23,540 bases of DNA from Fonticula alba ATCC 38817 (Eukaryota; Protista; Nucleariida), in the NCBI GenBank assembly GCA_000388065.2, contig KB932205.1; one strand, written 5' to 3'. The notes beneath the pieces were generated by a model. It searched no databases. It was not told the DNA's origin and saw nothing but the letters and a program-made list of their open reading frames with translations. Made by a program: the position numbers and the translations under genes. How positions within the stretch are numbered: position 1 is the first letter of the stretch; each line of letters starts with the position of its first letter. Positions 1 to 21,847 of the stretch are shown here, piece after piece.

Positions 1-274
1 TCGGTATCCTCCGCCACTCGGACTACATGAACCTGGCCCAGTGCGAGACCCTGGATGGTGCGCCTCCTTGCCCCCTCGCCGGCCGCCTGCCGCATTGCCA
101 GCTGCCCAAACTGACCCTCCTGCTTTCCATCTCCGCCGGTGGCAGATCTCAAGCTCCACCTCTCTGGCTCGGACTACGGCAACTTCCTCCAGAACGAGCC
201 CTCCCCCCTGGCCACCACCACCATCTCCCAGGTACTTTTCCCCGCGTGCCGGCCCCCCGGTCCACACACACACA

Positions 275-305
<31 letters not shown>

Positions 306-1590
306 TCCCTTCCCCTTCCTCCACCCCCCACGCTCACACGTGCCCCCAACACCTCCTCCCCTTCCCTGTGGCTAGAAATGCACTGAGAAGATGGTCGCCG
401 AGTTCCGCCACCTCCGTGCCAATGCTGTTCCCCCCCTGTCCAAGTTCCTGGACTACATTACGTACGTCCTCTTTCCTGTCCCCCCCTCGCTCCGGCCGGT
501 CCTCCGTCGCGGCTTCCTCGCTGACCCCTGTCTACCCCCCTGCCTCTCGTCCTGCCCTCCCTTGCCCTTTGGCCGGCATACACACACACACACACAACAC
601 ACACAACACACACAGCTACGGCTACATGATCGACAACATTGTTCTCATCCTGACCGGCACCCTGCATGAGCGCGACACCTCCGAGCTCCTGGAGAAGTGC
701 CACCCCCTGGGCATGTTCGAGGCCCTGCCCTCCCTCTGTGTGGCCACCACCACGGCCGACCTGTACAACTCGGTCATCATCGACACCCCGCTGGCCCCCT
801 ACTTCTCGGCCTCCCTCAGCGAGGCGGACCTGGACGAGCTGAACATCGAGATCATCCGTAACACCCTGTACAAGGCCTACCTGGAGGACTTCCACGCCTA
901 CTGCCAGCGCCTTGGTGGCACCACCGCCGAGATCATGGGCAAGCTCCTGGCCTTCGAGGCCGACCGCCGTGCCATCAACATCACCATCAACTCCTTCGGC
1001 ACCGACCTGACCAAGGACGAGCGCTCTCGCCTGTTCCCCACCATTGGCCAGCTGCACCCTGATGGCCTGGCCCGCCTGGCCCGCGCCGATGATGTTGAGG
1101 GTGTCGCCGCCGCTTGCAGCCCGTACCCCGAGTACAGCCGCGCCTTTGAGGACGCCGAGGTCGAGGGCAAGTCCCTGGAGGAGTGCTTCTACGCGTGCGT
1201 TTGCCCTCTCTCTTCTTCTTCTTTTTTTTTTCGCTTCCCTCCCTCCCCTGTCCCGGCCGCCCCCGTCTCCTCCTGCGACCATTAGAGGGCGCATGCGAGA
1301 GGGAGAGAAAGGCGAGGGCGAGGCGAAAGAAAAAGGGCCCGCGCGAGCCAATCTCCCTTTCCTACTAACACACACATGCCCGCCCGTCCCCCCCCCCCCC
1401 CGTGCCTCTCCTTTTCAGTTACGAGGTTGAGCTCCTGAAGTCCAGCTTCGAGCAGCATTTCCACTTTGCCACCTTCTACGCCTTCGTCCGCCTGAAGGAG
1501 CAGGAGATCCGTAACATCGTCTGGATCGCCGAGTGCATTGCCCAGAGCCAGCGCGACAAGATCAACCACTACATCAACATCTTCAACTAA
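1..1590 (+). CDS. VMA6: V-type H+-ATPase V0 subunit d, 5'-truncated; exons <1-57, 146-231, 376-461, 616-1194, 1419-1590
   Basis: The spliced product reads [33 protein letters not shown]...[27 protein letters not shown]...CHPLGMF...DTPLAPYF...[21 protein letters not shown]...[15 protein letters not shown]...[31 protein letters not shown]. These are hallmark Vma6/ATP6V0D motifs. All four introns (58-145, 232-375, 462-615, 1195-1418) are GT-AG and phase-compatible. Positions 3-1590 spliced give 978 nt = 326 codons. Confidence 0.97.
266..305. repeat. (CA)n microsatellite in V-ATPase d intron 2
   Basis: Visible acacac tract; similar tracts occur at 577-615, 1830-1860 and 19117-19140. Confidence 0.9.
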
Positions 1591-4564: not shown

Positions 4565-5067
4565 TGCAGGCCGGCGATGCGTGGGCGAGGAGGCAGGGCG
4601 CGAGTGGGCGGGGCTGGGAGGGGGAGGAAGGGCGAGGGGGATGGGCCTCACCCCGGCGCCTGGCCGCCGGGCTCGTGCGGCCGCCGGGCTCTTGAGGCCG
4701 GAGCACGATCGGCATCCGGGCCGCACCGAGATCGCACATGTGTGTATGTGTGTGTGTGCCTGCCCCGGGGCCTGGGGGAACCGGGCCCAGGTGCCAGCGG
4801 ATCGCGACTAGACGGCCGCGCTCATGGGCCACCGCGGTCCGGCAGGCGGGCAGATCGCGGCGCCTTCGCCACAAAGACCCTTGTGCATTTCCTTCCCCCA
4901 GCCTGCTTTTCCCCCCCCCCCCCCCCCCTCCCTCGCGTGCCCTTTTGCCCTTTCCGTGCGGGGTTCCTTTCGCCTCTCGACCTTGGCCTCCCCCGCCCCC
5001 CCCTTCTCCCTCCATCCCTTCCTCCCTCCCTCTCTCCCTCCCTCCCTCCATAGCCCGAGCAGTGTGA
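4565..5067. promoter_or_regulatory. Putative bidirectional promoter between the tRNA-binding gene and Gemin5
   Basis: The divergent predicted start codons are 503 bp apart. No specific element was identified. Confidence 0.45.
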
Positions 5068-8000
5068 ATGTCGCTCGCAGGCGAACTGGCGGCGCCGGGC
5101 GAGGCGTCGGCCCTGGCTCTGGGCCTCGGGGCTCTGGCGCCTGAGTGCGGGCCGGCGGCCAGTGCGTCGGCCGTCATCCTGCCGGCCTCGCCGAACTGGC
5201 ACTCCTCCAGCGCGGTGGCCGTGCACCCGCGCCTGCCGCTGGTGCTGCTGGCTTGCAAGGATGCCGTGGTTCTGGTGGCGCCGGCGACCGGTGGCGGGTG
5301 CCCCTCGGGGCCCTCGCCGGCGGACTTCCGCGTGGTGGCCTGGCACAATATGAATGGCTCGGCCGGGGCGCCCAATCGATCGATCGTCCGCGTGACGGCC
5401 GTGGCCTTCGCCCAGAGTGCGGCCGGGGCCGCGGGCCCGGGGGCCTTGCTGGAGGACGCCCTGCCGGCGGTGCGGCTGGTGGCCGGCTTGTCGGACAACC
5501 GGGTGGCCCTGTTCCAGGTGGCTCGCGGCGCGGCCGGCGGCCCGCACGGCGGCGCACGCTGGGTCCTCCGGCAGGTGGCCCGCCATGCGGGGCACCGATC
5601 GGCCGGGTCCACCGCCGACGGGGACTCCGGCGGGGTGTCTTCCGAGGGCACGGCCGCTGTGCCGGCCGGCGGGCCGGGCGGCCGGGCGCGCGGGAATCGC
5701 TCCGCCGGCACGGTGCCCCCCTCGTCAGTGACTACGGTCAGCGCGTCGGCCGACTCGCCGTGGGTGGTGTCCGGCGATGGGCTGGGCCGGGTGGTGGTTT
5801 GGCGCCTGCCATCGGGCGATGCTTCCGCCGGGCCGGACCCAGTGGCCGGCCTCCTTGACAGCCTTGTCCAGCCTGCCGGGCCGGCGAGCGACCCGGCAGC
5901 TCGGCGATTGCTGGAGCAGTCGCGCTTCCCGGCCCAGACGCACGGCGGGTCCGAGCAGACGGGCTACTGGTCGCGATTGCAATTGATCGGCGCGGCGACG
6001 GGCCCGGCGTCGGCCGGCGCCTCCTCCGGGTCGACCGTGCGCGGGGGCGGCAGCGGTGCCCGCGGTCGCGGGCCACGGGCCGCTGTCGGCGGATCTTCCG
6101 GCGGTGTGGCGGCCATCTGCTCGGATTGGGCCCCCTTCGCCGTGCCGGTCTTCGCCATCGGGTGCGTGCTCGAGGCCCCGTCGTTCCCGGCGCTGTGGGC
6201 TCTTGACTGACCCTTTCCCTCGCTCCTCGCTCCTCGGGACGACGCCGATGATGATGGTGTGCGTTTGTGTGTATTTCTGTGTGTGTATTTCTGTGTGTGT
6301 ATTTCTGTGTGTGTATTTCTGTGNNNNNNNNNNNNNNNNNNNNNNNNNNNNNNNNNNNNNNNNNNNNNNNNNNNNNNNNNNNNNNNNNNNNNNNNNNNNN
6401 NNNNNNNNNNNNNNNNNNNNNNNNNNNNNNNNNNNNNNNNNNNNNNNNNNNNNNNNNNNNNNNNNNNNNNNNNNNNNNNNNNNNNNNNNNNNNNNNNNNN
6501 NNNNNNNNNNNNNNNNNNNNNNNNNNNNNNNNNNNNNNNNNNNNNNNNNNNNNNNNNNNNNNNNNNNNNNNNNNNNNNNNNNNNNNNNNNNNNNNNNNNN
6601 NNNNNNNNNNNNNNNNNNNNNNNNNNNNNNNNNNNNNNNNNNNNNNNNNNNNNNNNNNNNNNNNNNNNNNNNNNNNNNNNNNNNNNNNNNNNNNNNNNNN
6701 NNNNNNNNNNNNNNNNNNNNNNNNNNNNNNNNNNNNNNNNNNNNNNNNNNNNNNNNNNNNNNNNNNNNNNNNNNNNNNNNNNNTGTATTTCTGTGCGTGT
6801 TTCTGTGTGTGTGTTTCTGTGCGTGTTTCTGTGTGTGTGCTTCTCGGTGTGGCACTCCTTACGCCCGTGTGTGTGCACGCGCGCGCGCGCGCGCGCCTGT
6901 GTGGCGGGCGGCGGGGACGCCAAATGGCAGCCACCAAAATGGCCAGATCTCCCTTTGCACCGTCCTGCCGGGGGCCCTGCTGGATGGGAGTGCCCCCTTT
7001 GCGGTGGCCATTTCCGCGCGACTGCGCGACCATTCGGACGCCGTGCAAACGGTGCGCTTTTCGCCGTTTCCGGTGTCGCCATTCGCCCCGGGCCCGGGTG
7101 CCAGCCCGGAACGCCGGGCAGTTCCGACCGCCGGGGCGTCGCTCGGCCCCGGCGTGGACTCGTGCCCGACCACGCCAGGGGTCGGCGGCCCGGCAGGGAC
7201 GGCGGCATCGGTCGGGCCGCTACAGTTGGCCTCATGTGCCGGGCTGGCACCGGTGCACGCGAGCCTCGGCGTGCCGCTGGTGGAGACGCTCTTCCTGGCC
7301 AGTGGCTCGCGCGACCAAACGGTGCGCGTGTGGGCCGTGCAGCCGGGCCTGCTGTCCGGCATCCGGGCGCCACTGCCGGCGGGTGATTCGCACCTGCTGG
7401 CCCTTGCTACCAGCTGCCTGGTGCGCTTCAATTACCCGCGCGACTCGACCGGACCCGGGGGCGGCCGCGGCCCGGGGGCAGCCGGGGGCCCATCCGCCGG
7501 CGACTCGGCCCCGGATGACGGTCGGCAGGCAAGCCGTCTGCGCGCGACGCTGACGTGGTCCGCCCGGCCAGGGGCCCCGGGCCGGGCTTACCAGTGTGTC
7601 TGTGCCCTGTCGACCGGGGCGGCCCCATGTGCCGGGGACCGGCTGGCGCCGATTCTCCTGTGCGGCTCGGCCAGTGGCGAGCTGTCGGTGTGGGACTTGG
7701 GCATGCCGCTGGTCCGGCTGCCGGGCCCGGCCGGCGGCGAGGCGGCCGCCGACGAGGCGCTCTTCGACATGCCGCGGTACACGACGGCCGGCGAGTGTGC
7801 GGCCTGGCGCCGGCGTTGGCCGGCCGACTTGCTTGCGGCGCCGGTGCTGCAGCATGCGCCGTGCTCCTTCCGGCCGGCATCGGCGGGATCGCCGGACGCC
7901 CCGGCCCCGCTCGGGGCTCGTCTCATCCGACGCCTGACCACCGGCGGCCATAATCGCACCATCTTTGGCCTGGACTTCGGGGGGTTTCCTTCGCCCGGCG

Positions 8001-8105
8001 TGGGGGCCTCCATCTCCATGGATCGGCAGGTGTGTACCTGGGGCCTTCTCCTCGGCCGCGTGCTTTCTGCGATGTCATGAGTGGGAGTATCGGCCTGGTG
8101 AACTG

Positions 8106-8140
<35 letters not shown>

Positions 8141-8261
8141 TGTGTGTGTGCGTGCGTGTGTGCGTGCGTGCGTGCGTGCGTGCGTGCGTGGGTGCGTGGG
8201 TGCGTGCGTGCGTGCGTGTGCGTGTGTCTGTGCGCGCGTGCTCCTCCCTCCCTCCCTACCC

Positions 8262-8298
<37 letters not shown>

Positions 8299-11200
8299 GT
8301 TCTCCCCACCCCCATCCGAACGCGGCACCCTCCCGGGGTCAAAGGTGATCATTTGGTCGCTGGCCGACTTGCAGCCGGTGACTCGCATGCCGACCCTCGG
8401 GGCCTTCGGCTGGGCCCTGAGCGTGGCACCGGAGACCGGACCGGCCCCGAGGCAGGTGGCCCTGGCCGTGGGCGATGGCACGGTGCGGCTGTTTGATCCG
8501 TGCACGGTGGGGCAGCGACGCCTGCTGCCGAGCTCCGGTCCGACCCCCGGCGTCGGGGCGTACGATGGCTGGCGCTCGGTCTGGCGGCGTCTCAACACCC
8601 AGGTGACCGCCTGCCGGCATGCGCCGGCCAGCGCCGACCCCCACCTGGCCGGGCGGCTGGCATACGGCCTGGTCGACGGCGGGGTGGGCTTGCTGTCGGC
8701 CGGGTCGGCCAGCCCGGCGGTGGTCCCCTCGCCGGGGTTCCACCAGGCCTCCGTGCAGGCGGTGGTCTGGCTGCGGGTGACCGAGCCGGATGAGGCGCCT
8801 GGCGGTGGCGCGGCCGGCGGCGCGGCTCCTGGCCGGTGGTCGCTGGCCTCGCTGGCGGCCGATGGCCAGGCGCTGCTGCTGCACCGCCTGGCCGGGCCAC
8901 CCTCGGGTGCCGAGCGCCCCGCCGGGCCGGAGCCGGCCGACGCTCGACCGGCCAAGAAGCGCCGGAAGCGAGGCCCCCCGGGAGATGCAGCCGAGTCCGG
9001 GCCCGGGGCCCCATCGTCGGACGCCTGGGCCAGCGGCGGGCCATTTATGTCGGGCCCGGGGCCGGGCCCGGGCCCGGCCGATCTGACGGGGGCCGTGCAT
9101 GGCGGGCAGGCCGGCCTGCCGGCCGATGCACGGCCCACCGCACTGGCCGGGTCCCCCTGCGGCCGGGTCCTGGCGGTGGGCTTCTCCAGCGGGCATGTGT
9201 GCCTGTATGTCCTGAGCGGGGCATTGGAACATCGGCTGTTGGCCGCCGGGGCGACCGGGACTGCGGCCCATCCGCCGGCCGAGGCGTGCCTGGTGCTGAC
9301 CGGCCACGGTTCGGTCCCCGGGCAGGAGTCCATCACATCGGTCGACCTGCTGGAGCACGGTACGTGAGACTGGCCCTGTGCCGGGGTCCCCGCCAGGGCG
9401 TCTCGGCATTGCTGCCGCTTCTTTTTTTTTTTTTTCCTTTTTGCCTTGGCGGCTCCCTGCCCGACGTCCGTTGTGTGTGAGTGTACATGCGTGCCCCTTC
9501 TCACCGGTTTTTTCCCGTTCCCCTTTCCATCCCACCCGCCCGGTCGCAGATGGGGGCCTCCTGCTGGCCGCGGCCACGGAACGCGGGCGGCTGCACGTCG
9601 CCGAGGCGGTCTCGGGCCCGGCCGCCGGGGGGCCGGACTGCCCGGCGGCCGAGCTGTCCTTCGGAGGCTTCGAGTCGCAGCAGCACTCGGATGCCGGTGT
9701 GGCGGTCTGCTGGGCTGCCGGGCCGCCGGAAGCCGTTCGCCATCCTGGGTACTTGGGATCCCTGGCCGGGGCACCGGGTGTCCCCGGGCCCGAGGCCACG
9801 GTGGCTCGTCTGTTGTCGCTCGCGCAAAATGGCTCGCTGCAGTTGTGGCACGTGGTGCTCGGGCCCGAGCGGGGCCGCCGGCGGCCGGTCCTCGCGGCCC
9901 GGTACCTGCCGGTGCATTTGGGCCAGGTGCATGGGGCGGCGGCCATGCTGCTACCTGGCTCCCGGGGGCTGGTCATTCTGTCGACCGGCAGCGACCAGAC
10001 CCTCCGGTCGACGCTGCTGGCCGATGACCTGGATCCGAAGCTGCTGTCCGGGCCGCCGGCCGTCTCGCCACCGGGGGACGGCCCGGTGCCCGTGGCGGCG
10101 GCCGTGGCGGCCCCAGCGGCGCCGGCGGTCCCAGCCCCAGCAGAGGCATTCCCCTCGCCCGGACCCGGGGGCCCGAGTCCGGCCAAGCGCCCGCGCGGGG
10201 AGGCCCCCGGCCGAGCCGCTGTCAGCCTGGCGCCCGACGCGACACCGGCCGCCAGCCCGGCCACGGGGAGTGACATGGCTGCCGGCGGGGAGCCGGGCCT
10301 GGCGCCCGGGCGCGGGCTCTTCTGGGACCTGCTGGGCCAGGGCCCCGGGCCGGCGCCAGGCCAAGCGTGCCCCTTCATGCGCCCGCTCCTGCCGATGGCC
10401 CAGTGCCTGGCGCCCGGGGCCGGGCTTCTCGGGCTTCGGCACCCGGCCGGCCCGGCGTGCGGCCGCCAGTGTGGCCTCCTGCCGTTGCTGCTCGCTTCCC
10501 CCACGCGAGACCTGCTGGCCCAGCTCCAAGCCTCCGGTGCGTGGCCGGACCCCGACTTGCCCTCGCCCCGCCCCCTTCCCCATGTGTCTCGCCTCCTCCC
10601 CCCCCCCCCGGCGTGGATCACTGACTTGCTGCCTCTTCCCCCTTCGCGGCTCCGCCTCGGGCGCCCTCTCCTGCCTCGCTGCTCGGGCGCAGCCCTGGCC
10701 ATGCCGGCCGGGAGGGGGCTCCTGGCCGGGGTGTGCCTGCAGGCATGGCTTGGCCATGGGCGGCGGGCCCTCGAGCGTGCGTTGGTCGATGTCGAGGCGA
10801 CGTGCGCCTGTGCCCGCTGCCGGCACGCATTGCTGGCCGGGCTGGCGGCCCTGGCCGGGCACTTTGCCCCGGGAGACCTGTCGCGGCGCTATGCGGCGGC
10901 GCTGTGCCGGCCGGCGGGCGCCGGGCGCCGGGCGGCTGCATGTGCCGCGGACCCGGGCCTCGGCCCGCTTCTCGGGGCCACCTTGGTGCTCGGGGCCGAG
11001 GGCAGCGCGGCCGGGGTCCGGGCCCTGGCCGAGGCCGGGCTGTGGGGCTTGGCGGTGGCCCTGGGCCGGGTCAACCTGCCGGCGGCTGGCAGCCTGGACG
11101 CCAGTGCGGCCGGGCCCCGGGGCCTCCTCCTCCAAGAGGTCCTCCACGCCGGTGCCCTGTCGGCCGCATCGCCCGCACACCCGGCCGGGCCATGTGCCGG

Positions 11201-12016
11201 CCCGCTCCTGAGCCGGTACGTGGCCGTGTGGCCCTTTTCTTTTTGCCTGTCTGTCCGCCCGTGTCTGTGTCCCTGTGCTGACCCCCCTTGCGGCCTGCTG
11301 TGCGCCCGCCGGTGTTGGGCCACGCCCCCCCGGGCATGCGCGCGCGGTAAATGCCCCCCCCCCCTGGACATGGCGATCGGGCTGCGCAGCTTCAGCCGGC
11401 TGGATGGTCCTCTTCGGACCGGCACCTCGGCGCCGGCGGCTCTGGAGAGTGTCTTCGGCCCGCCGGAGTCCGGTGGTTTGGTGCCCACGGCGGATGTGTC
11501 CCCGGTGGAGGGCCTGTTCCTGCGACTGGACGCCTGCCTGTTCCTGCTGGGCGATGAGACGCTCCCGCTGTCGGAGACGCATGGCGGCGCGACTGTGCGT
11601 TTACACCCCTGCCCTGGCCACCGCCTCGCATGTGCGCCCCCCAGGGCCTGGCTGACCCGCATCTCTATTGACCGCCTCCCCCCCTCCCCCGGCCGCCGGG
11701 GCCGCCGGCTGCCGCGTGTCCTCTTCCTCCTGGCCAGATTCCGGTCTCCGAGCGCCGGAACACCTTTGCCCGGTTGGCGGGCGCGGCTGCGGAGGTTGCC
11801 GCCCGGCTGGGCGCCAGAGCCATGCACCCCCTCGGGGCGTATGGCACGGGCGGCGACCCGCCGGGGGACGGCGCCCTGGCCGGCCGACTGCTATACCGTG
11901 CCGGGCTGCTTCTTCAGCCGGATGGCGCGATCGTGGCCGAGGCGCCGGCCGAAGGGGGCCTGGCCGAGTGGGTCACGCGCATCTGCGAGCTCTTGTCACG
12001 CCAGGAGTCCACATGA
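5068..12016 (+). CDS. GEMIN5: Gemin5 homologue (tandem WD40 propellers plus TPR-like dimerisation module); exons 5068-6161, 6931-8029, 8345-9359, 9550-10536, 10693-11215, 11390-11594, 11738-12016 (~1733 aa)
   Basis: Collinear matches to human Gemin5 as recalled: LPASPNW (5179-5199) ~ LPPSPNW; FAIG/HQNG ~ VAIGYKDG; [13 protein letters not shown] ~ LASGSKDQTIRIW; HNRTIFGL ~ HSRIVFNL; SMDRQ/VIIW ~ SMDRDVKCW; [22 protein letters not shown] ~ PSLGGFAYSL..AIGVGDGMIRVW; [12 protein letters not shown] ~ LAFGTDDGKVGL; [10 protein letters not shown] ~ AIAIAKARL. All six introns are phase-consistent and the CDS totals 5202 nt. The start is uncertain (possible acceptor CAG ending at 5080), and intron 1 spans an N-gap. 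Confidence 0.88.
6258..6840. repeat. (GTGTGTATTTCT)-like minisatellite spanning an assembly gap in Gemin5 intron 1
   Basis: gtgtatttct(gt)n units occur on both sides of N-gap 6324-6783, which likely explains the gap. Confidence 0.85.
8108..8294. repeat. Compound microsatellite (GT)n-(GCGT)n-(CT)n in Gemin5 intron 2
   Basis: Directly visible: tgtgtg..., then gcgtgcgt..., then tctctctc... before the acceptor ending at 8344. Confidence 0.9.
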
Positions 12017-15000
12017 TCTCAATCCCGAAATAGTCCACGCCTTTTTGTTTTCCCTTCTCCCCCTGGTGCGCCACGACCGCCGGCGACGTCGGCGGCCCCC
12101 TGCCCCGCTCGAGGGGAGGCCTGGCCGGGGTCCAGACGGGGGGGGGGCATTGCTTGGTGGAGACACATTTGTGTGGGTGTGCGCGTGCGCGCGTGCGGGG
12201 GAATGAGACCGCGCAAAGGAGGGAGCCGGTCGCGGCCGCCCTCCTCCGCGGCGGTGCATATGGCGCGGGCTGGTTCCTCATCCGGTCAGGAGGCCCTGCC
12301 TGCACCCCGTATCGCGGGGTGCGGGGGGAGATGACTCGGGCCGATCGGCGGGCGTGTGCTCCCCTTTCGGACGCACCTGCCCCCGATGGAGGCCTCCGGG
12401 GGGGGGGGGGGCGAGGGGCGTGTGCGCGCCGGTGCGAGCCCCCGCGACTCCGGGAGACCAGGCCTGGAGGCCGGACGAGATGCGCGAGGGGCCGGGGACA
12501 AAAAGCTGAGGCATTCCCTGGACAGCCGGCGACGCGCGGGTCCCACGCACGACGCGGGCCCGGGGGGCGTCGGGGGGGGGGGCCCCGCCCGGCGCCTGGT
12601 CGGCTCTCATGGGGCCGGATGGAGTTTGGGGGCGGGCGGCAAGGGCAGCAAGGGCGGCAAGGGCGAGGGGGGTTGGGGCGGCGGCCGGCCCTGGCGCGTC
12701 CGAGGGCACCGGGCCTGCCTGCCGGTGCGTCGTGAGCCGGCTGCCCTGCCGGCCCCGGGGCGCGGTGTGTGGCCCGATTGGGGGTGAGCCAGCCCCGCAG
12801 GGTGTGGGCAGTGGGTGGCGACGGGGGCGCGGGTGCGGGCACGCGGCGGGCGGGCCGGGGCACATTCTCCGGGCCCCCGTGCGCTGTGCCGCTATTTTTC
12901 AACACCCCGCGACATTTCCTCGCAGGGGGGCGGGCGGGACCAAATTTGGATTTCTCTCGGGGGATGGCCTCGGGGATTACATAAGAAAAGGCGCGCCCGG
13001 GAGGGAGTGTGCCCGGTGTCCCGCGCGCACGCAGGCCCTGAGTGCGTGGTTGCGCCGCCCCCCCTCCGCGGCTTGGACCGGCGTCCTGCGTTCCCACCCA
13101 TTCCCTGCCGGGTGCTCGGGCGTTGGGGCATCCCTGGCGCTCTCACGGGTCGTGGGTGCGGGGCGCCGCGGGCCGGGGGACTTCCCGGCTCCGAGCGAGA
13201 CGGCCCTGGTGCAGGAACCCCCCCCCCCCCCTGCTGGGCCCCCCGGCCCTCCGGGGGTCCCCAGCAGAAGGCCCCAAGGAGGTGCGGGGCCGCGGGCGTG
13301 GGTGTTGGCTTCGGTGCCGGGGGGGAGCCGGGGGCGCGCGCTTGCACGAGCGAAGCCGCCGCACGCACGCACATTTTAGCGAACCATGTGGCGAGAACTC
13401 GGGGCCATTTTCACGCTCGGGCCGAACTGCCAGTTGTGACGCTGGCAGGGATTCCGGCGATCCTGGTTTAGGGCCCCCGGCCGGCGGCCGCCCTCGCGCC
13501 CGCGCCGGGCGAGCTGTTGGGCGGAGGGGGGGGGGGGCCGGCGACCGCTTGGGCTGGCGCCCGCAAGCCCGGGCACTCGCGGCAACTCCGCCGTCCCTTG
13601 CCGGAGGGGAGGCACGTTGCTGGGGGGGGGGGCTGCCTCCGGGTGTGGGCGAATCCCCGCCAGGCCCTCGGGCGGGGCGGGGGGACAGCGGATTCCTCTG
13701 TTTCAGAATGGCCAGCGCTGGTGTGCCCTGCCAGGCAGCGCTCCCGGCCCGACCCCCCGGCAGAGGGGTTGGGCTGGATTTCACCCGGCTCCCACCTTCG
13801 GGGCGGCGGAGAAACCGGCCGGCGCCCGGGCCAGGACCCGAGACCCAGCGGCAGTTCCCAATGGTCTCCGAGCCATGTCTCGGCCCTGCCAGCGGTGGCC
13901 GGCGCCCGGATGGGGGTGCATGCTTGCGCGTTTGTCCCGCCCCCCCTCCCCCGGCCGGGGGAGGCAGATCGCGGGGCGCCCCCGGCTCGGAGGCCGATCG
14001 GCCCCTGTGCGAGTGTGTGCGTGTGCGCGCGCGGGGCTCGGCCGGGGGCCCCGGGGGGGGGGCGGGGGGGCGGGCGGGCAAGGGGGAGGTGCGGGCGAGG
14101 CGAGGCGAGGCGAGGCGAGACGAAGGGGGGCCCGCCGAGGGGCGCCGGCGCCGGGCCNNNNNNNNNNNNNNNNNNNNNNNNNNNNNNNNNNNNNNNNNNN
14201 NNNNNNNNNNNNNNNNNNNNNNNNNNNNNNNNNNNNNNNNNNNNNNNNNNNNNNNNNNNNNNNNNNNNNNNNNNNNNNNNNNNNNNNNNNNNNNNNNNNN
14301 NNNNNNNNNNNNNNNNNNNNNNNNNNNNNNNNNNNNNNNNNNNNNNNNNNNNNNNNNNNNNNNNNNNNNNNNNNNNNNNNNNNNNNNNNNNNNNNNNNNN
14401 NNNNNNNNNNNNNNNNNNNNNNNNNNNNNNNNNNNNNNCGTGCCCCGCCTCTCCGGCCCTAGGTCCGGGCCTGCGGTGTGCGGGCTCGCGGAGACGGTGT
14501 TTTCATTTTCGCCCCGTTGTGCCGGAGGGCCGCCCCGCGACGGGGAACGCGCCCGGGGCCTGATCGGAAGCCCGCCCGGCGCCCGGAGCCCCGCCCCCCC
14601 CCCAGTGCCGGGATTGTGATCGGTCCGGTCCACGCGGCGGCGGCGGCGGCGGCGGCCTTCGGCCCCGGTGTCCGGCGGCGGTGCGTGGCGCGTCAACTGC
14701 GGCTGTGTATTTGCGCCTCCGGGACTGGAGGGGGGGGGGGCACGGGTGCGTGTGCGACATCCGGCCGGGGAGAATGCCCGGAGCCCTTTCCCGGAAGGCT
14801 GGTAGGTGTGCGCCCGCACGCCGGCGTCGCCAATCCTCCGGCCGCCCTGCTCGCCCGGCGGGGCGGTTCCCGCGGAGCCTGTGACTACTGGCGCGCTGCC
14901 CGACCCGGCCCCCCCCCCCCGGCCACAAGCCCGGAGCGGCCCGCAACCCCCGGGCGTCTGGTCAGAGGTCTTGACTTCCGCGCCCCTGTGGGTCCAATCT

Positions 15001-16055
15001 CCGAGCCCCGGCCGCGGTGCGGGGGGGGTCATGGGGGAGACGCCCCCCGGGCATGGCCCGGTCCGGGGGAGGGCGTGGGGGTGGGGTGCCGGGGGCGCGG
15101 GGGTGGGGGGGGGGGGGTGCCGGCATGTGCACGGGGCGAGGCGAAATATTTCCCTCATCACCAAAGTATGGAGAGGAAGAGCCGCGTCCAGCCATCTCCC
15201 CCAGGTTCTGCCCCCTCCTCCCTTCCTTTCCCCTCCCCTCCCCTCCCCTCCTTGGATCTCCCCTTCCCTCTCGCCTCCTCCCGGTGTGCCGCGTCGCCCT
15301 TTGCCCGACTGCGCGCCCGGCTGCTCCTCCCTTGCCCCCTCCCCTCCCGTCACTCGGCCCTGTCACAGCCCAGCTTTTCTCGGCCCCGTCCTCCCCCCCC
15401 CCATTCCCCCATTGTCTCCCCCCTCGCCCGCAGCTTTGAGCAAGTTCTGCGGCTGAAGATCTCGCGCGCGTGCGCGCCCCTCTCTCCCCCCCCCCCCTCC
15501 CCTTCCCCTCGCCTCTGCTCCGGTTGTGTTGCCTCATCCACAGTAGAGCACGGNNNNNNNNNNNNNNNNNNNNNNNNNNNNNNNNNNNNNNNNNNNNNNN
15601 NNNNNNNNNNNNNNNNNNNNNNNNNNNNNNNNNNNNNNNNNNNNNNNNNNNNNNNNNNNNNNNNNNNNNNNNNNNNNNNNNNNNNNNNNNNNNNNNNNNN
15701 NNNNNNNNNNNNNNNNNNNNNNNNNNNNNNNNNNNNNNNNNNNNNNNNNNNNNNNNNNNNNNNNNNNNNNNNNNNNNNNNNNNNNNNNNNNNNNNNNNNN
15801 NNNNNNNNNNNNNNNNNNNNNNNNNNNNNNNNNNNNNNNNNNNNNNNNNNNNNNNNNNNNNNNNNNNNNNNNNNNNNNNNNNNNNNNNNNNNNNNNNNNN
15901 NNNNNNNNNNNNNNNNNNNNNNNNNNNNNNNNNNNNNNNNNNNNNNNNNNNNNNNNNNNNNNNNNNNNNNNNNNNNNNNNNNNNNNNNNNNNNNNNNNNN
16001 NNNNNNNNNNNNNNNNNNNNNNNNNNNNNNNNNNNNNNNNNNNNNNNNNNNNNNN

Positions 16056-16220
16056 CTCCCCCCCTGATATGTCCCCTATGTCGCTGGTTGGCCAACGCCA
16101 AGCGTCCCTGGCGGACACCGCCCGGTCCTGCCTTCCCCCCCCCCTCCCCCCCTGATATGTCCCCTATGTCGCTGGTTGGCCAACGCCAAGCGTCCCTGGC
16201 GGACACCGCCCGGTCCCTGC
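16056..16220 (+). repeat. Direct duplication (88-bp period) at a contig edge covering the predicted start codon
   Basis: cctgatatgtcccctatgtcgctggttggccaacgccaagcgtccctggcggacaccgcccggtcc occurs with its ATG at 16069 and again at 16157, immediately after the N-gap. Confidence 0.85.
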
Positions 16221-16922
16221 CGCACGGGGCCGCCACCGGCGGCGGCGGCGGCGGCAGCGGCCCCACCGCCGCCCTCGGCGCCACGCAGCAGGAGCTCCTC
16301 CTGCACTTTGACCTGGCCACCGAGCACCTCTACCTGCCGGAGGGTGTGGTCCCGCCGAAGGACCGCCTGCCGCCGGCCAGCGGGGAAGCCGGCCTGACGC
16401 TGGCCTCGACTCGGCGGCCGTTCCCCGGCTCCGGCTCCGGCTCGAGTCTGGTGACCGGCGGCTCCTCCTCCGGGCAGTTCGCGTCCCCCGGCGGCGGGCC
16501 GGCCGTCGGCCTCCAGCGCCTGCTGCCCGGGCCCGCGCCCTCCTCCGAGTCGCACTTCCTCTTCGGTGCCAATGCCGGGCCCGGCCCGTATGCCGACTCG
16601 AGCGCCCTCCTCCCCGGGCCTGGTCTGGCCGACGGGGGTCCCTTTTCGCAGCCGCGCTTCCTGACTCATGGGTGCGTCCCCCCCCCCCCCCCTTGCTATT
16701 CCTCCTTCTCGGCCGCCGCCTGCCCCATCGCTGCTGTGTCTCACATCTGCCCTGCTGACGGCTGGGCCCCTCCCCTGTGCCCCCCTTGTTCGGTTCGGCC
16801 CGCTCCATGCCATGCCACGCCGTGTCGCCTCTTCTCGCACCCCATGCCGGTTGCCGCGTGGCCCGGTCCAGATCCGGCGGCTATCCGACATCCGGCCACG
16901 GGGGCCCCACTCCGACGCCCCC

Positions 16923-16962
<40 letters not shown>

Positions 16963-19900
16963 TACCAGCCGGACGCCCGGGCCATCGGGCCGGTGTCTGT
17001 CCAGCAGCCACCGCTGCCGCCGCCGGCACAGCAGCAGCCCCTCGGCACCCCCAGCCGCGGGGACTTCCACGAGCCTGGCTCTTTCACCCCCTTCGGCCAG
17101 CACCCCGGCTCGGCGCACCAATCCCCCGGCAGCCGGAGCGACTCGTCCTCCCCCCCGCAGCCGGGCGACCTGCACCGGGCCAAGCGCCCGCATGACGCCC
17201 TCCTGCCGGGCCCCGGGCCGGTCATCCACCACGGGCAGCACCATGCCCCGGGCTCGGGAGCCGCGCGCTACATGCCCAGCCCCCATGGCCTCGGACCCGG
17301 CAACACCCCGGGCCCGAGCCCGCACTATGCCGGCCTGCCGTATGCCGGCGGCCCGCGTCCGGTGCCGGCCCCTCTCTCGGAGGAGTATTACCACGGGCTG
17401 GGGGCCGGGCCGGGTCCGTTGGCGGCCGTCCCGCTCGATGTCGGCTTTGCCGGGGCCCGCTCGCCGGGGCAGCACGGCCCGGGGCCCGCCGCCGGGGGGG
17501 GCACCTTCGCCATCGGCACCAACAATGGTCCTGGCCCCGGTGCTTCCCTCTCTTCCGGCCCGGGGGGCTACACCCCGCGGCACTACCTGCCGGCGGGCGG
17601 GGCCTCGGCAGCCGCATCGCCCGTGGTCGGTGGCGACCTGCCCCTGCACAAGCGCCCGCGCGCGGCATCCTTCTCCGGGGGTCTCTCGTCGCCCCGGCGC
17701 CCGGGCACCGGGGTGCTTTCCCACTCGGATGAGGAATCGCCGGTCCTGCCGGCCGAGGACTCCTTCGAGGGCGGTGGCTCGTACGCCCCGAACGGCGGGT
17801 CGGCCGGGCCCCATGGCGGGTACTCGTACCTGCCGCCGCCGCAGTTGCTGGTCGGCGCGCGCTGGCTCCCCGGGGCCGGGGCCTCGTCGGCCCGTGGCGG
17901 CGGCAGCGGCCCCAACTCGCAGTCGGACTCGCGCTCGGCGTCGCCCTTCCCCGGGAGCGGCCCCTCCGGGGGCCGGGGCTCCCCGGCCGGCACCTCGCGC
18001 TCCCTCGTGTCGCGGCTCAATCACAATGCCTCGGAGCGCCGGCGCGCCCACAGCATCAATGATGCCATCACCCGGCTGCGGCAGCTGGTCCCTGGCTGTC
18101 GGTCGTCCCTGGTGACGGACACCGGGGAAAAGATCAGCGGCAATGAGAAGGTCACCAAGTCCGATGTCCTGCACAAGACATGCACCTATGTGGAGGACTT
18201 GCAGCTGGACTATCAGGAACTCCTGGCCCACATCGACCGCATGGGCCGCGAGATGGACCGGCTGAAGGCGCAGCTGGCGGCCGCCCGTGGGGGGGACCGT
18301 GCCGTCACCGGCGCCTCGGCCCAAAAGCCCCCCGGCCGGCAGCATGAGCAGCGGCAGCAGCAGGCCGGCGAGTTGGCCCTGCCGCCGCCGCCGTCGCAAC
18401 AGCAGCAGCCGCAGCCGCAGCCGCAGCCGCAGCAGCCGCAGCACCATCTCCCCGGGCCGCCGTATGATACGGTGTCCTTGCCGGGCGCCGGGGCTTCGCC
18501 GGTCCTGCAGCAATCCCCGAATGCTGGTGGGCCCGCCATGCAGACGCTGGCCCGGTCGTCGGGCATGCATTCGCAGCAGCGCTTCGCCCCGCCCCACATG
18601 TATGCCGGCCACCCGGGCGTGGCGCCGAGCATGTTCGGCTCCCCCCGGTCGCTGTCTTCCTCCTCCTCCTCCTCCTCCTCTTGCTCCTCGGCGGCGGTGT
18701 CCTCCTCCTCCGAGCCGGAGGACGACCTGAACTCGCCGCACATGCCGGGCCCCGGCAGCGGCCACGGCGGTGGCACCGACCACTTCTCCCCGTCCCAGGC
18801 TGATGCCTCCTCCTCCGGGCCACACGGCTTCCCGGTCGGTCCTTCCGTCAGCACGGACGGCCTGTCGCAGCATCTGGCGGCCAGCCCATTTGGCGGCCCG
18901 CCGGTCAGCGGTGCGTTTGCCCTCTCTCCCTCTTTCCTTTCCTTCCTTCTTCCCCCTCGCTCGCCGCGTGCACCCCGCGCGCCATGTGCCTTGCCATTCT
19001 CTTGCATGGCGACTGCCCTGCTCTCATCCTCGCCCTGGGCGGGCCCCCCCTTCTGACGCGCTTTGTGCTGCCATGGATCCCCCCCGGTGCCGATGCTCCC
19101 CCTCCGGCGCTCTTCTCACACACACACACACACACACACTCGACCCACCCCCGGTGCAGATGGCTTTGGCATGGTGGAGGCGTATGGCGCACCCGGGTCC
19201 GGGGCCTTTGGGGCGGATCCCCTGGCCGCGGGTGCCCCGGCGGCCGGTGACGCCACGGCCGACGGCCAGATCAACACGCTGGAGCTGCTGGCCCCGCGCG
19301 AGCGGTCGCACGTTCCCCAGACCACCGGCACGGCCTTCCTGGAGTATGCCTCCTCGGTGTTCATCTTCATCACGGTGTTCATCTACCTGCCGATGGTGTT
19401 CGACCGGGCCACCAACGGCTCGACCAAGGCCGCCCTGTCGTCGGCCATTGTCGGCATGCCGGGCTTCCAGGGGGCCACCGGGGCCGGGCTGGCCGGGGCC
19501 GGGGGCACCTTGGCACACCTGGCCGCCGGGGCCGGCAACAATGGCACGGCCGATGTCCTGGCCGCGCCGGACCAGCTGCCGGGCCTGGTGAACTCGCTGT
19601 CCTCCAGCCAGAACCTGGTCCTGTCGCTGGTGGCCCTGGTGCCGGACCTGTCGGACCCGCTGTTCCCGGTCCGGTCGCTGGTGTACTCGGGGCTGGTGCT
19701 GGCCCTGAAGGTGTCGGTGTCGGTGGTGGTCTTCCGCCTGCTGCTGCTCCGGGCCACGGTCAATCTGTCCTCCTTCTCGCAGATGCGCCAGCGGGCGGAG
19801 CGCGCGCGTGCCCTCCGCCACCGGGCCGACGCTCTGGTCTCGGCCGGCAGCATCAACAAGGGCCGCGAGCTGTATGCCGAGGGGCTGGAGCTTCTGTGGG

Positions 19901-21180
19901 GCCGTCCCCTGCGGGCCATCTACTCGGCCAACCTGCTGTCCCCGCTGACGCGCTCAACCGTGGCCGAGCGCTTCCTCAACTTCTGTGCGTGCCATGCCGC
20001 CCCCTCTGGGTCTTCCTCCCCTCCTTTCCCCCCCCCCCCCCCAGCACAAAAGGGGAAGAAGAGAGAGGTATCCCACCCCAAACCAAAGAAATAAACAGCA
20101 AAAAAAACCAAAGAGATAATAATTTAACCCACACCAAAACCCTCCCCCCCCCCCCCCCACCCCCCCCCCCCCCCGGCAGGCGTGCTCATCCACACGACTC
20201 TCTTCCTGCTCTTCCACGGAGTTCTCTACATCTCCAACCGGGTGCCGGTCTTCCGAATGATCAGCAACCGGATCCTCCACCTGCCCGGTCTGGACGAGGT
20301 GACCAGCGAGATGGTGGCCCTGCTGTATGGCATCTTCAAGCACCAGCCCTACGAGACATGGCACACCTCGCTCCAAACCTACTCGTATGCCCTGGCCGCG
20401 GTCAACATGGAGGAGACCAAGCACTCCAACAGCGAGATCCTCACCGAGTTGCTGGCCTACTTCTCCATCGGGATCGAGCATGTGCGTGTCGCCGTGCTGC
20501 ATGTGGATCTCCCCGTGTCTCCGCCTCTCTGCCTTTTTGCCCCCCTTTCCACCCCTGTCCCGGGGCACACTTTCTAACATCCCCCCCCCCCCCCCCCCGC
20601 GCGCGCACCCCCTCGCATGCACCACTCCCGCACGCAGCTTGAGGTCCGCGACTTGGTGGAATACCTGCGCTCGCGGGCTCTCTACCTGGCGGCCGTGTAT
20701 CATGGCCCGGAGCAGGTGGCCCGGGTCCGGGCCATTCTCCAAGCCCAGACCCCGCCCGACCAGCAGCTCTTCCGCATGGCCCGGTCGTCGGCCCCATACC
20801 TGGTGTCTTTCATCCTGCGCATCATCATGCTGCTGATGACCAGCGTCAATGCGGCCGTCAGCATGCGCGGCCTGCGTGAGGAGGAGCTGGCCCTGTTCCT
20901 GTCGGATGAGGGCGCCAGCGGTGCCGACGTGGCCACCACTGCCGCCGGGTCCTGCGTCCCGGCCGGGGTGGCGGCCCTCAAGGCGCCCCCTGCGGGGGCC
21001 GACGCCGGTGACCGCGACGGCGGCCCGGCCGAGACGACGACCCCCGCCGCCGCTCACGACGGCGGCGTCGCCGCCAGCACCGTCCCAGACATGGCCATGC
21101 TCGGCTCCTCGGGGACGGCCTCCCCCCTTGCCGAGGGGTGTCCCTCCTCGCCGGCCGCCATCTCCCTCAAGCAGGCCTAG
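16157..21180 (+). CDS. SREBF: SREBP-like membrane-anchored bHLH-ZIP transcription factor; exons 16157-16671, 16872-18910, 19160-19984, 20180-20481, 20638-21180 (~1407 aa)
   Basis: Four GTGCGT...CAG introns (16672-16871, 18911-19159, 19985-20179, 20482-20637) each join the adjacent ORFs in exact phase; the CDS totals 4224 nt. Domain order is disordered N-terminus, bHLH-ZIP, TM1, loop, TM2, helical C-terminal domain. The C-terminal domain has RHRADALVSAG..LELLWGRPL and ALAAVNMEE, resembling SREBP RHRKQADLDLARG..LRALGRPL and ALSALNLAE. Additional 5' exons could lie in or before the gap at 15554-16055. Confidence 0.85.
16924..16962 (+). repeat. (CAG)12CAA encoding polyQ13 in the SREBP-like N-terminus
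   Basis: A perfect CAG run in frame with exon 2 (PPQQQQQQQQQQQQQYQP). Confidence 0.9.
18013..18285 (+). other. bHLH-leucine zipper domain of the SREBP-like protein
   Basis: RLNHNASERRRAHSINDAITRLRQLVP, a loop, then KVTKSDVLHKTCTYVEDLQLDYQELLAHIDRMGREMDRLKAQL. The HNA.E and SIND motifs, the helix-2 K.K..VL.K...Y pattern and the L/L/M/L heptads are all present. Confidence 0.93.
19345..19401 (+). other. Predicted transmembrane helix 1 of the SREBP-like protein
   Basis: YASSVFIFITVFIYLPMVF is a 19-residue uncharged hydrophobic run with a Pro near its end. Confidence 0.8.
19675..19749 (+). other. Predicted transmembrane helix 2 of the SREBP-like protein
   Basis: SLVYSGLVLALKVSVSVVVFRLLLL is hydrophobic and directly precedes the SREBP-like C-terminal domain. 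Confidence 0.7.
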
Positions 21181-21847
21181 CCTGCGCGTGTGCATCCCCC
21201 CCCCCCTGCTACGCATGCGAGACGCGGCTGGCTGGCTGGCTGGCTGGCTGGTGTTCTGCCATCGCGCTCCCCTCCCTCTCCCCCCTCGTCCTTGTGAATG
21301 GGTTGCTCCTCCTCCTTTGTATTCTAATTCCCCTGGAGCCGGGCCCGAAAGTGTGCTCGCGCACGTCCCCCCTCCCCCCCNNNNNNNNNNNNNNNNNNNN
21401 NNNNNNNNNNNNNNNNNNNNNNNNNNNNNNNNNNNNNNNNNNNNNNNNNNNNNNNNNNNNNNNNNNNNNNNNNNNNNNNNNNNNNNNNNNNNNNNNNNNN
21501 NNNNNNNNNNNNNNNNNNNNNNNNNNNNNNNNNNNNNNNNNNNNNNNNNNNNNNNNNNNNNNNNNNNNNNNNNNNNNNNNNNNNNNNNNNNNNNNNNNNN
21601 NNNNNNNNNNNNNNNNNNNNNNNNNNNNNNNNNNNNNNNNNNNNNNNNNNNNNNNNNNNNNNNNNNNNNNNNNNNNNNNNNNNNNNNNNNNNNNNNNNNN
21701 NNNNNNNNNNNNNNNNNNNNNNNNNNNNNNNNNNNNNNNNNNNNNNNNNNNNNNNNNNNNNNNNCACATACACCTACCTGCCCGCCCCCCCCCCCCCCCC
21801 AAGGCCCTCCGCGGCCCCTCCACCAGATAGACAGCCCCTCTCTCCCC

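Follow-up and report, generated by a model that had tools for sequence, protein, structure and literature searches.

An expressed bHLH-zipper gene of Fonticula alba with a predicted membrane anchor and a basic region that lacks both the SREBP tyrosine and the group-B arginine

Introduction

To our knowledge, SREBPs (sterol regulatory element-binding proteins) are the only well-studied basic helix-loop-helix (bHLH) factors that are tethered to membranes. Their hallmark is a tyrosine at position 12 of the basic region (Tyr12), which has also been the criterion for inclusion in the phylogeny of fungal SREBPs (PMC6329520, PMC3894159). Tyr12 gives these proteins dual binding to sterol regulatory elements (SREs) and E-boxes (PMC8431614, PMC6329520); it breaks an Arg-Glu salt bridge, which allows the non-palindromic SRE to be bound (PMC8431614, PMC6329520, PMC3894159). 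At the adjacent position, an arginine (Arg13) is invariant in the bHLH proteins of group B, where it makes base as well as phosphate contacts and is responsible for the choice of the central base in CACGTG (PMC8431614). Group-A proteins have Arg8 and a Met, Leu, Val or Thr at position 13, make no contact with the central bases and prefer CAG or CAT half-sites (PMC8431614), and groups A, D and E are described as metazoan-specific (PMC5064789). In addition, the monomers of a bHLH dimer can take different half-sites with different partners (PMC8431614). Here we analyse a bHLH-zipper gene located at 16157-21180 on the plus strand of a 23,540-nucleotide stretch (hereafter, the window) of contig KB932205.1 of Fonticula alba ATCC 38817 (assembly GCA_000388065.2), whose product has neither Tyr12 nor Arg13.

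Taking the statement as a whole, we lean, with slightly better than even confidence, towards the view that this gene encodes an expressed, predicted membrane-anchored and lineage-specific bHLH-zipper protein derived from group B, which would be released by proteolysis and would bind DNA without selecting for a central CG. Below, we present the evidence on the basic region, the affiliation of the domain, the gene and its product, and then weigh the alternatives.

Results

The basic region occupies 18010..18048 on the plus strand (residues 552-564; positions 1-13, SRLNHNASERRRA) and contains Arg2, His5, Asn6, Ser8, Glu9, Arg10-12 and Ala13, in a register that was taken from Pfam and from alignments to USF2, SREBP-1a, MITF and NeuroD1. 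Within it and running into helix 1, positions 18022-18060 (+) give HNASERRRAHSIN (CAC AAT GCC TCG GAG CGC CGG CGC GCC CAC AGC ATC AAT), where GAG at 18034 encodes Glu, CGC at 18037, CGG at 18040 and CGC at 18043 encode three successive Arg residues, and GCC at 18046 encodes Ala. The Pfam HLH profile (PF00010) matches the open reading frame (ORF) that encloses the motif with an E-value of 5.9e-14, and its profile position 2 corresponds to the Arg at 18013, which results in His5, Glu9, Arg12 and Ala13. In the gap-free HMMER alignment to SREBP-1a (1am9, HNAIEKRYR), Arg12 of the query lies opposite the Tyr, and Ala13 opposite the Arg that follows it. The HMMER alignments to other solved structures, likewise free of gaps in this stretch, place Ala13 opposite the last Arg of HNEVERRRR in USF2 and of HNLIERRRR in MITF. 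A first-pass annotation of the window had read E-R-R-R-A at this site and had set HNASERRRA against the HNAIEKRYR of SREBPs; its codon assignments prove to be exact.

To check the individual bases, assembled contigs of two RNA runs (X1 and X2) and of two independent DNA samples (X6, a soil-metagenome run from 2022, and X7, a run from 2025 labelled as another organism) were compared with the window over 16100-21250. The contigs of X1 and X2 cover 16972-18371 and those of X7 cover 17977-18371, in both cases with no difference to the window. Over 17695-18371, the contigs of X6 show a sole difference, T>C at 18199, which is synonymous (Leu>Leu). At the motif itself all four agree with the window, and in none of them is RYR or RRR restored. 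The possibility that a base error underlies the unusual residues, which the first-pass annotation had raised along with its claim, is thereby settled in favour of the sequence as given: as far as assembled contigs show, the agreement of X1, X2, X6 and X7 rules out a sequencing error at Arg12/Ala13.

With respect to the affiliation of the domain, comparisons with structures in the PDB placed the whole domain nearest to USF2 (28 bits), followed by Myc (26.3), Tye7 (23.4), SREBP-1a (21.9) and Max (20.9). For the basic region together with helix 1 the scores lay close together, at 20.8 bits for SREBP-1a, 20.5 for NeuroD1, 20.2 for USF2 and 19.1 for MITF, and helix 2 together with the zipper matched Myc (21 bits), SREBP not being among the matches listed. 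An exhaustive HMMER search of 1.84 billion representative proteins returned eight matches at E <= 1e-3, the best of which scored 40.7 bits at 36% identity; neither the protein itself nor any orthologue was among them. Seven of the eight, which include a protein of the aphelid Paraphelidium and Drosophila USF, belong to the USF type (HNEVERRRR) or to an HNAVERRRR type, and the remaining one (P0002) is repetitive and has no bHLH motif. No SREBP-type representative among these 1.84 billion proteins reached the listing threshold, whereas USF types did. A USF-led profile search contributed 120 further proteins, every one of which was again of the USF or the HNAVERRRR type. His5, Val8, Arg12 and Arg13 occur in all 124 relatives that were fetched, in a sample biased by the fact that the candidate words included ERRRR. 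All 87 USF-type matches have HNEVERRRR, where the Fonticula protein has HNASERRRA, so the signature of the USF family is absent from the latter. In a local phmmer comparison, USF types reached up to 38 bits and the HNAVERRRR type 40.7 bits. A word-indexed homologue search with the 759-residue exon-2 ORF, restricted to the bHLH domain, gave no match at E <= 1e-3 in a length range outside which 1407-residue products lie, and two scans of JGI metagenomes, one with the bHLH domain and one with exon 3, revealed no relative. A further word-indexed search, started from an alignment that contained fragments of SREBP-1a and Tye7, produced no scoring match, low-complexity words having dominated its candidates.

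The residues that distinguish the bHLH groups can be compared directly. Group B is characterized by His or Lys at position 5, Glu9, Arg13 and, often, a zipper; the Fonticula domain has His5, Glu9 and a zipper, and an Ala at position 13. As for group A, which is characterized by Arg8 and by Met, Leu, Val or Thr at position 13, the domain has Ser8 and Ala13, and NeuroD1 is matched at the score given above for the basic region and helix 1. Judged from these comparisons, the domain is a divergent bHLH-zipper derived from the pan-eukaryotic group B and without specific affinity for SREBPs, in which Ser8 and Ala13 are departures from all nearby relatives.

The flagged motif sits in a real, spliced and expressed gene. 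Its five exons span 16157-21180 (+) and encode 1407 residues in an intact frame with a single, terminal stop codon. Exon 1 (16157..16671; residues 1-172) encodes a low-complexity N-terminus, and its junction with exon 2 (16671|16872) is present in RNA contigs of both X1 and X2. Exon 2 (16872..18910; residues 172-852) encodes an activation-type region rich in Gly, Pro, Ser and Gln, then the bHLH-zipper and the first part of a linker, and is covered by RNA contigs over 16972-18371 and 18452-18909 with no differences. Exon 3 (19160..19984; residues 852-1127) completes the linker and adds hydrophobic segments 1 and 2 as well as the first, Arg-rich part of the C-terminal domain; single RNA contigs run across its junctions on both sides (18910|19160 and 19984|20180). 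Exon 4 (20180..20481; residues 1127-1227) opens with hydrophobic segment 3 and is joined in the RNA, at 20481|20638, to exon 5 (20638..21180; residues 1228-1407), which encodes hydrophobic segment 4 and an Ala/Gly-rich tail and ends with the stop codon TAG at 21178-21180; RNA contigs reach 21205 and 21219. Hence, all four introns (16672-16871, 18911-19159, 19985-20179 and 20482-20637; 156-249 nucleotides) are seen in transcript contigs, two as reported joints and two inside single RNA contigs, and all of them have GTGCGT as donor and CAG as acceptor. Because of the GT..AG polarity of these RNA-supported junctions, the plus strand is the coding strand. The antisense ORF at 16741-18873 is therefore ruled out as a real gene, and is a by-product of the G+C content of about 75%. 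Long stretches rich in C, or of C alone, occur in the introns too, and intron 2 additionally has a (CA)n run; unrelated metagenome contigs pile up on the poly-C tract near 20581-20612, where the depth in X6 peaks at 1060.

The 5' end of the gene is provisional, and so is the choice of 16157 for the start codon, since just upstream lie an assembly gap (a run of N at 15554-16055) and a duplication of 65 nucleotides. The duplicated stretch, which contains the proposed start codon, occurs at 16064 and at 16152 (window 16056-16216), and its first copy runs into a stop codon. RNA contigs carry unaligned upstream sequence before 16132/16135. The duplication looks like an assembly artefact.

Samples X6 and X7 carry the gene at about 99.8% identity over 16100-21250, with five single-base differences and two 3-nucleotide indels over the roughly 3 kb covered in X6, and one difference in X7. 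This near-identity indicates that these environmental or co-culture samples contained either the same strain or one very close to it. Five of the differences in the other samples fall in coding sequence, four of them being synonymous and one replacing Ser by Pro in the low-complexity N-terminus; there is also an in-frame insertion of 3 nucleotides in the Gly/Ala-rich loop described below. Although drawn from few sites, this pattern would fit purifying selection.

The predicted protein starts with a Gly/Pro/Ser/Gln-rich N-terminus (residues 1-545). Beyond the basic region, helix 1 (residues 565-579; 18049-18093), a loop of 18 residues (580-597; 18094-18147) and helix 2 (598-616; 18148-18204), all on the plus strand like the features that follow, were delimited by the Pfam HLH match and by PDB alignments to USF2 and Myc. 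Helix 2 is continued by a short leucine zipper (residues 615-~645; 18199..18288), which was read from the sequence and aligns along the zipper of Myc; its heptads, at a spacing of 7 residues, are marked by Leu at 18199, Leu at 18220, Met at 18241 and Leu at 18262. A Ser/Pro/Gly-rich linker of about 270 residues (646-905) then leads to the hydrophobic segments, which were called by the Kyte-Doolittle and Hessa hydropathy scales only. Segment 1 (residues 914-932; 19345..19401) is a predicted transmembrane helix with a Kyte-Doolittle value of 2.02 and a summed Hessa-scale value of 1.24 over 19 residues. Segment 2 (residues 1030-1048; 19693..19749) is the second predicted transmembrane helix (Kyte-Doolittle 2.44; Hessa 1.05). 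The Gly/Ala-rich loop between them (residues 933-1029; 19402-19692) contains two N-glycosylation sequons, NGS and NGT. Six Lys/Arg residues are found among the 20 residues directly after segment 2, and this positive flank suggests that the protein continues on the cytosolic side of the membrane. A Leu/Ala/Arg-rich region (residues ~1055-1320) holds segment 3 (residues 1126-1144; 19981-19984 and 20180-20232), which may span the membrane as a third helix or be a helix buried in the protein, and segment 4 (residues 1282-1300; 20800-20856), and is followed by the Ala/Gly-rich tail (residues ~1321-1407). The first-pass annotation had taken the protein for a membrane-released factor with an SREBP-like basic helix, and the order of the parts, with hydrophobic segments after the bHLH-zipper, is indeed that of SREBPs. 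The loop between segments 1 and 2 ends in PVRSLV, a single weak motif with a loose likeness to the site-1 protease motif (RxxL type) of SREBPs.

Elsewhere in the window, an ORF at 41-1285 (+), which is cut by the window start, matches subunit d of the V-ATPase (Pfam vATP-synt_AC39, E-value 4.5e-51). The region 5000-15500, about 10 kb with a G+C content of 72-79%, contains very long ORFs that occupy several frames of both strands and is interrupted by runs of N at 6324-6783 and 14158-14438; a Pfam search of seven ORFs from this region gave no matches.

Discussion

The interpretation that we favour involves three steps. The protein would reside in an internal membrane by means of a helical hairpin formed by residues 914-932 and 1030-1048, with both its ends in the cytosol. 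Proteolysis would next free the N-terminal half, as it does in the case of SREBP. The released part would then dimerize through its zipper on E-box-like sites, whose central two bases would not be discriminated in the way they are by Max, USF and SREBP.

The last step follows from the residues of the basic region. The rules of recognition that the first-pass annotation had invoked, concerning Tyr12, Arg13 and group A, are borne out by the literature (PMC8431614, PMC6329520). The DNA-contacting residues that are retained in the Fonticula protein are Arg2, His5, Asn6, Glu9, Arg10-12 and the Lys that opens helix 2. Read against these rules, the residues that have been kept would be those for the CA of the E-box half-site and for the backbone, and what has been lost would be the contact that selects the central CG. 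We infer that the protein would bind DNA without a preference for CACGTG and, because the tyrosine is absent, without SRE-type binding. CAGCTG would be just one of several possible sites, because position 8 is a Ser and not the Arg that is typical of group A.

Several considerations weigh against this interpretation. With respect to the membrane, the number of segments above the hydrophobicity thresholds is four and not two, so that the protein may cross the membrane either twice or four times, and either number would leave the N- and C-ends in the cytosol. Furthermore, a cleavage motif of the site-1, site-2 or rhomboid type was not established in the protein, and no orthologue backs membrane insertion or cleavage. 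With respect to DNA binding, the loss of Arg13 may merely weaken the interaction and not retarget it, and a Ser at position 8 is out of keeping both with group A (Arg8) and with the relatives of the protein (Val8). In addition, no DNA motif can be transferred from another protein because no homologue exceeds about 40% identity.

The alternative that survives best, which we nevertheless regard as unlikely, is that the protein is a true SREBP descendant. According to this explanation, an ancestral SREBP with Tyr12, Arg13 and the membrane hairpin would have been duplicated in this lineage, and the present copy would have undergone reversion of Tyr to Arg and loss of Arg13, and would have been rewired to another regulon. 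The combination of an N-terminal activation region, a bHLH-zipper, a hydrophobic hairpin and a C-terminal domain, which is otherwise known only from SREBPs (PMC6329520), speaks for it. The bHLH-leucine-zipper that this requires is present (HLH E-value 5.9e-14; Leu/Leu/Met/Leu heptads). Where SREBPs have a hairpin of two membrane helices with both ends cytosolic, the hydropathy scales predict two strong hydrophobic segments with a positive flank, together with the two further candidates. Moreover, SREBP-1a is the best match of the basic region and helix 1 when these are taken alone (20.8 bits), with HNA-E-R and SIND-I-L-LV in common. However, its lead over NeuroD1 and USF2 is just 0.3-0.6 bits, and the residue opposite the family-defining Tyr of SREBP-1a is an Arg (CGC at 18043-18045). 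In pairwise scores, the whole domain is closer to USF2 (28 bits) than to SREBP-1a (21.9 bits), helix 2 with the zipper matches Myc and no SREBP, and it was USF types, not SREBP types, that rose above the listing threshold in the exhaustive search. Neither DUF2014 nor any other match to the C-terminal part of SREBPs was found: the C-terminal region of about 500 residues, which was searched as three exon pieces and hence with lower sensitivity, has no Pfam match at E-values up to 10, and the C-terminal exons have no PDB sequence match and only sub-threshold neighbours in the Atlas. Fungal SREBPs are themselves poorly conserved beyond the DNA-binding domain, and DUF2014 occurs in Ascomycota only (PMC6329520, PMC3894159). 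A tail without matches is thus compatible with descent from an SREBP, and, because real SREBPs diverge outside the DNA-binding domain, the silent C-terminal search neither proves nor excludes such descent. Considering the missing Tyr, the lack of a C-terminal SREBP match and a domain that is marginally nearer to the USF and HNAVERRRR types, the proposal in the first-pass annotation of a rewired or early-branching SREBP paralogue is not supported.

A second alternative, to which we give a distinctly low probability, is that the protein is a weak or non-autonomous DNA binder that would act mainly as a heterodimer partner of other bHLH-zipper proteins, or as a dominant-negative for them that is sequestered at the membrane. 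The short zipper, of about four heptads, would agree with such a role. Yet all other DNA-contacting positions are retained, and the metazoan factor AP-4 (TFAP4) binds DNA well without Arg13. The same is true of group-A factors (PMC8431614). On the side of this alternative, it should be noted that replacing Arg13 by Ala should cost affinity, since both the base and the phosphate contact would be lost (PMC8431614), and that bHLH monomers can take differing half-sites depending on their partner.

Finally, that the protein is an ordinary nuclear bHLH-zipper with an odd basic region, whose hydrophobic stretches are buried in a soluble, all-helical C-terminal domain, seems very improbable to us. In its favour, charges or polar side chains interrupt each of segments 2, 3 and 4 (Lys/Arg, two His, and Arg), a language model gives exon 3 weak neighbours in TPR-like helical-repeat clusters, and there is no homologue of proven topology. 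Against it, segment 1 (residues 914-932) is a clean hydrophobic stretch of 19 residues with a Kyte-Doolittle value of 2.0, segment 2 reaches 2.44 and has after it the classic flank of the positive-inside rule, with six Lys/Arg among 20 residues, and the intervening Gly/Ala-rich loop has the sequons NGS and NGT.

The interest of the favoured interpretation, that of a membrane-anchored group-B derivative that would be released by proteolysis, lies in the combination it describes: the layout of an SREBP, an ordinary Arg12 and a lost Arg13 in an expressed gene of a deep-branching relative of fungi. The protein thus provides a natural test of whether membrane tethering is tied to the SREBP lineage, and of what a group-B basic region reads without the central-base contact. 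It is tempting to go further and propose, although we consider it rather doubtful, that Fonticula has a small lineage-specific family of membrane-tethered, non-SREBP bHLH-zippers, in which a group-B domain resembling those of USF and MITF, its basic region modified (to Ala13 in the present case), has been joined to a membrane module. If this were true, the regulated release of bHLH proteins from membranes would be older than the SREBP tyrosine or would have arisen repeatedly, and the E-box variants read would be ones for which no non-animal group-B protein is known to have a preference. The finding is of modest practical value, as we are dealing with one species, with no orthologues found, and with a protein known here from sequence and transcripts alone.

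Comparison with known systems

With SREBP and fungal Sre1, the Fonticula protein shares an activation-type N-terminus, a bHLH-zipper, a long linker, a hydrophobic hairpin, which in the Fonticula protein is predicted, and a C-terminal domain, all in the same order. The likeness to SREBP-1a extends to the HNA-E-R and SIND-I-L-LV residues mentioned above. It differs from SREBPs in having Arg12 for Tyr and Ala13 for Arg, in its loop of 18 residues, in its helix 2 and zipper, which are not SREBP-like, and in its C-terminal part, which has no detectable similarity and possibly four, not two, membrane segments.

AP-4 has a residue other than Arg at position 13, and binds CAGCTG, not CACGTG. Since it is classed in group B (PMC1828162), AP-4 may by analogy serve as a precedent for a bHLH-zipper of this group without Arg13. 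Unlike the Fonticula protein, it is nuclear and metazoan, has two zippers, and lacks both a membrane anchor and His5; it was not among the matches of the bHLH domain in the PDB, the 1.84-billion-protein or the profile searches.

The closest relatives of the domain as a whole are USF and the holomycotan HNAVERRRR types (for example, Paraphelidium P0007), which are its best whole-domain matches (36-41 bits, 34-47% identity) and with which it has in common a loop that opens with VPGC/IPDC and the continuation of helix 2 into the zipper. These proteins are soluble and have 100-400 residues, whereas the Fonticula protein has about 850 residues more, including the hydrophobic module; and where 124 of 124 fetched relatives carry Val8, Arg12 and Arg13, the Fonticula protein carries Ser8 and Ala13.

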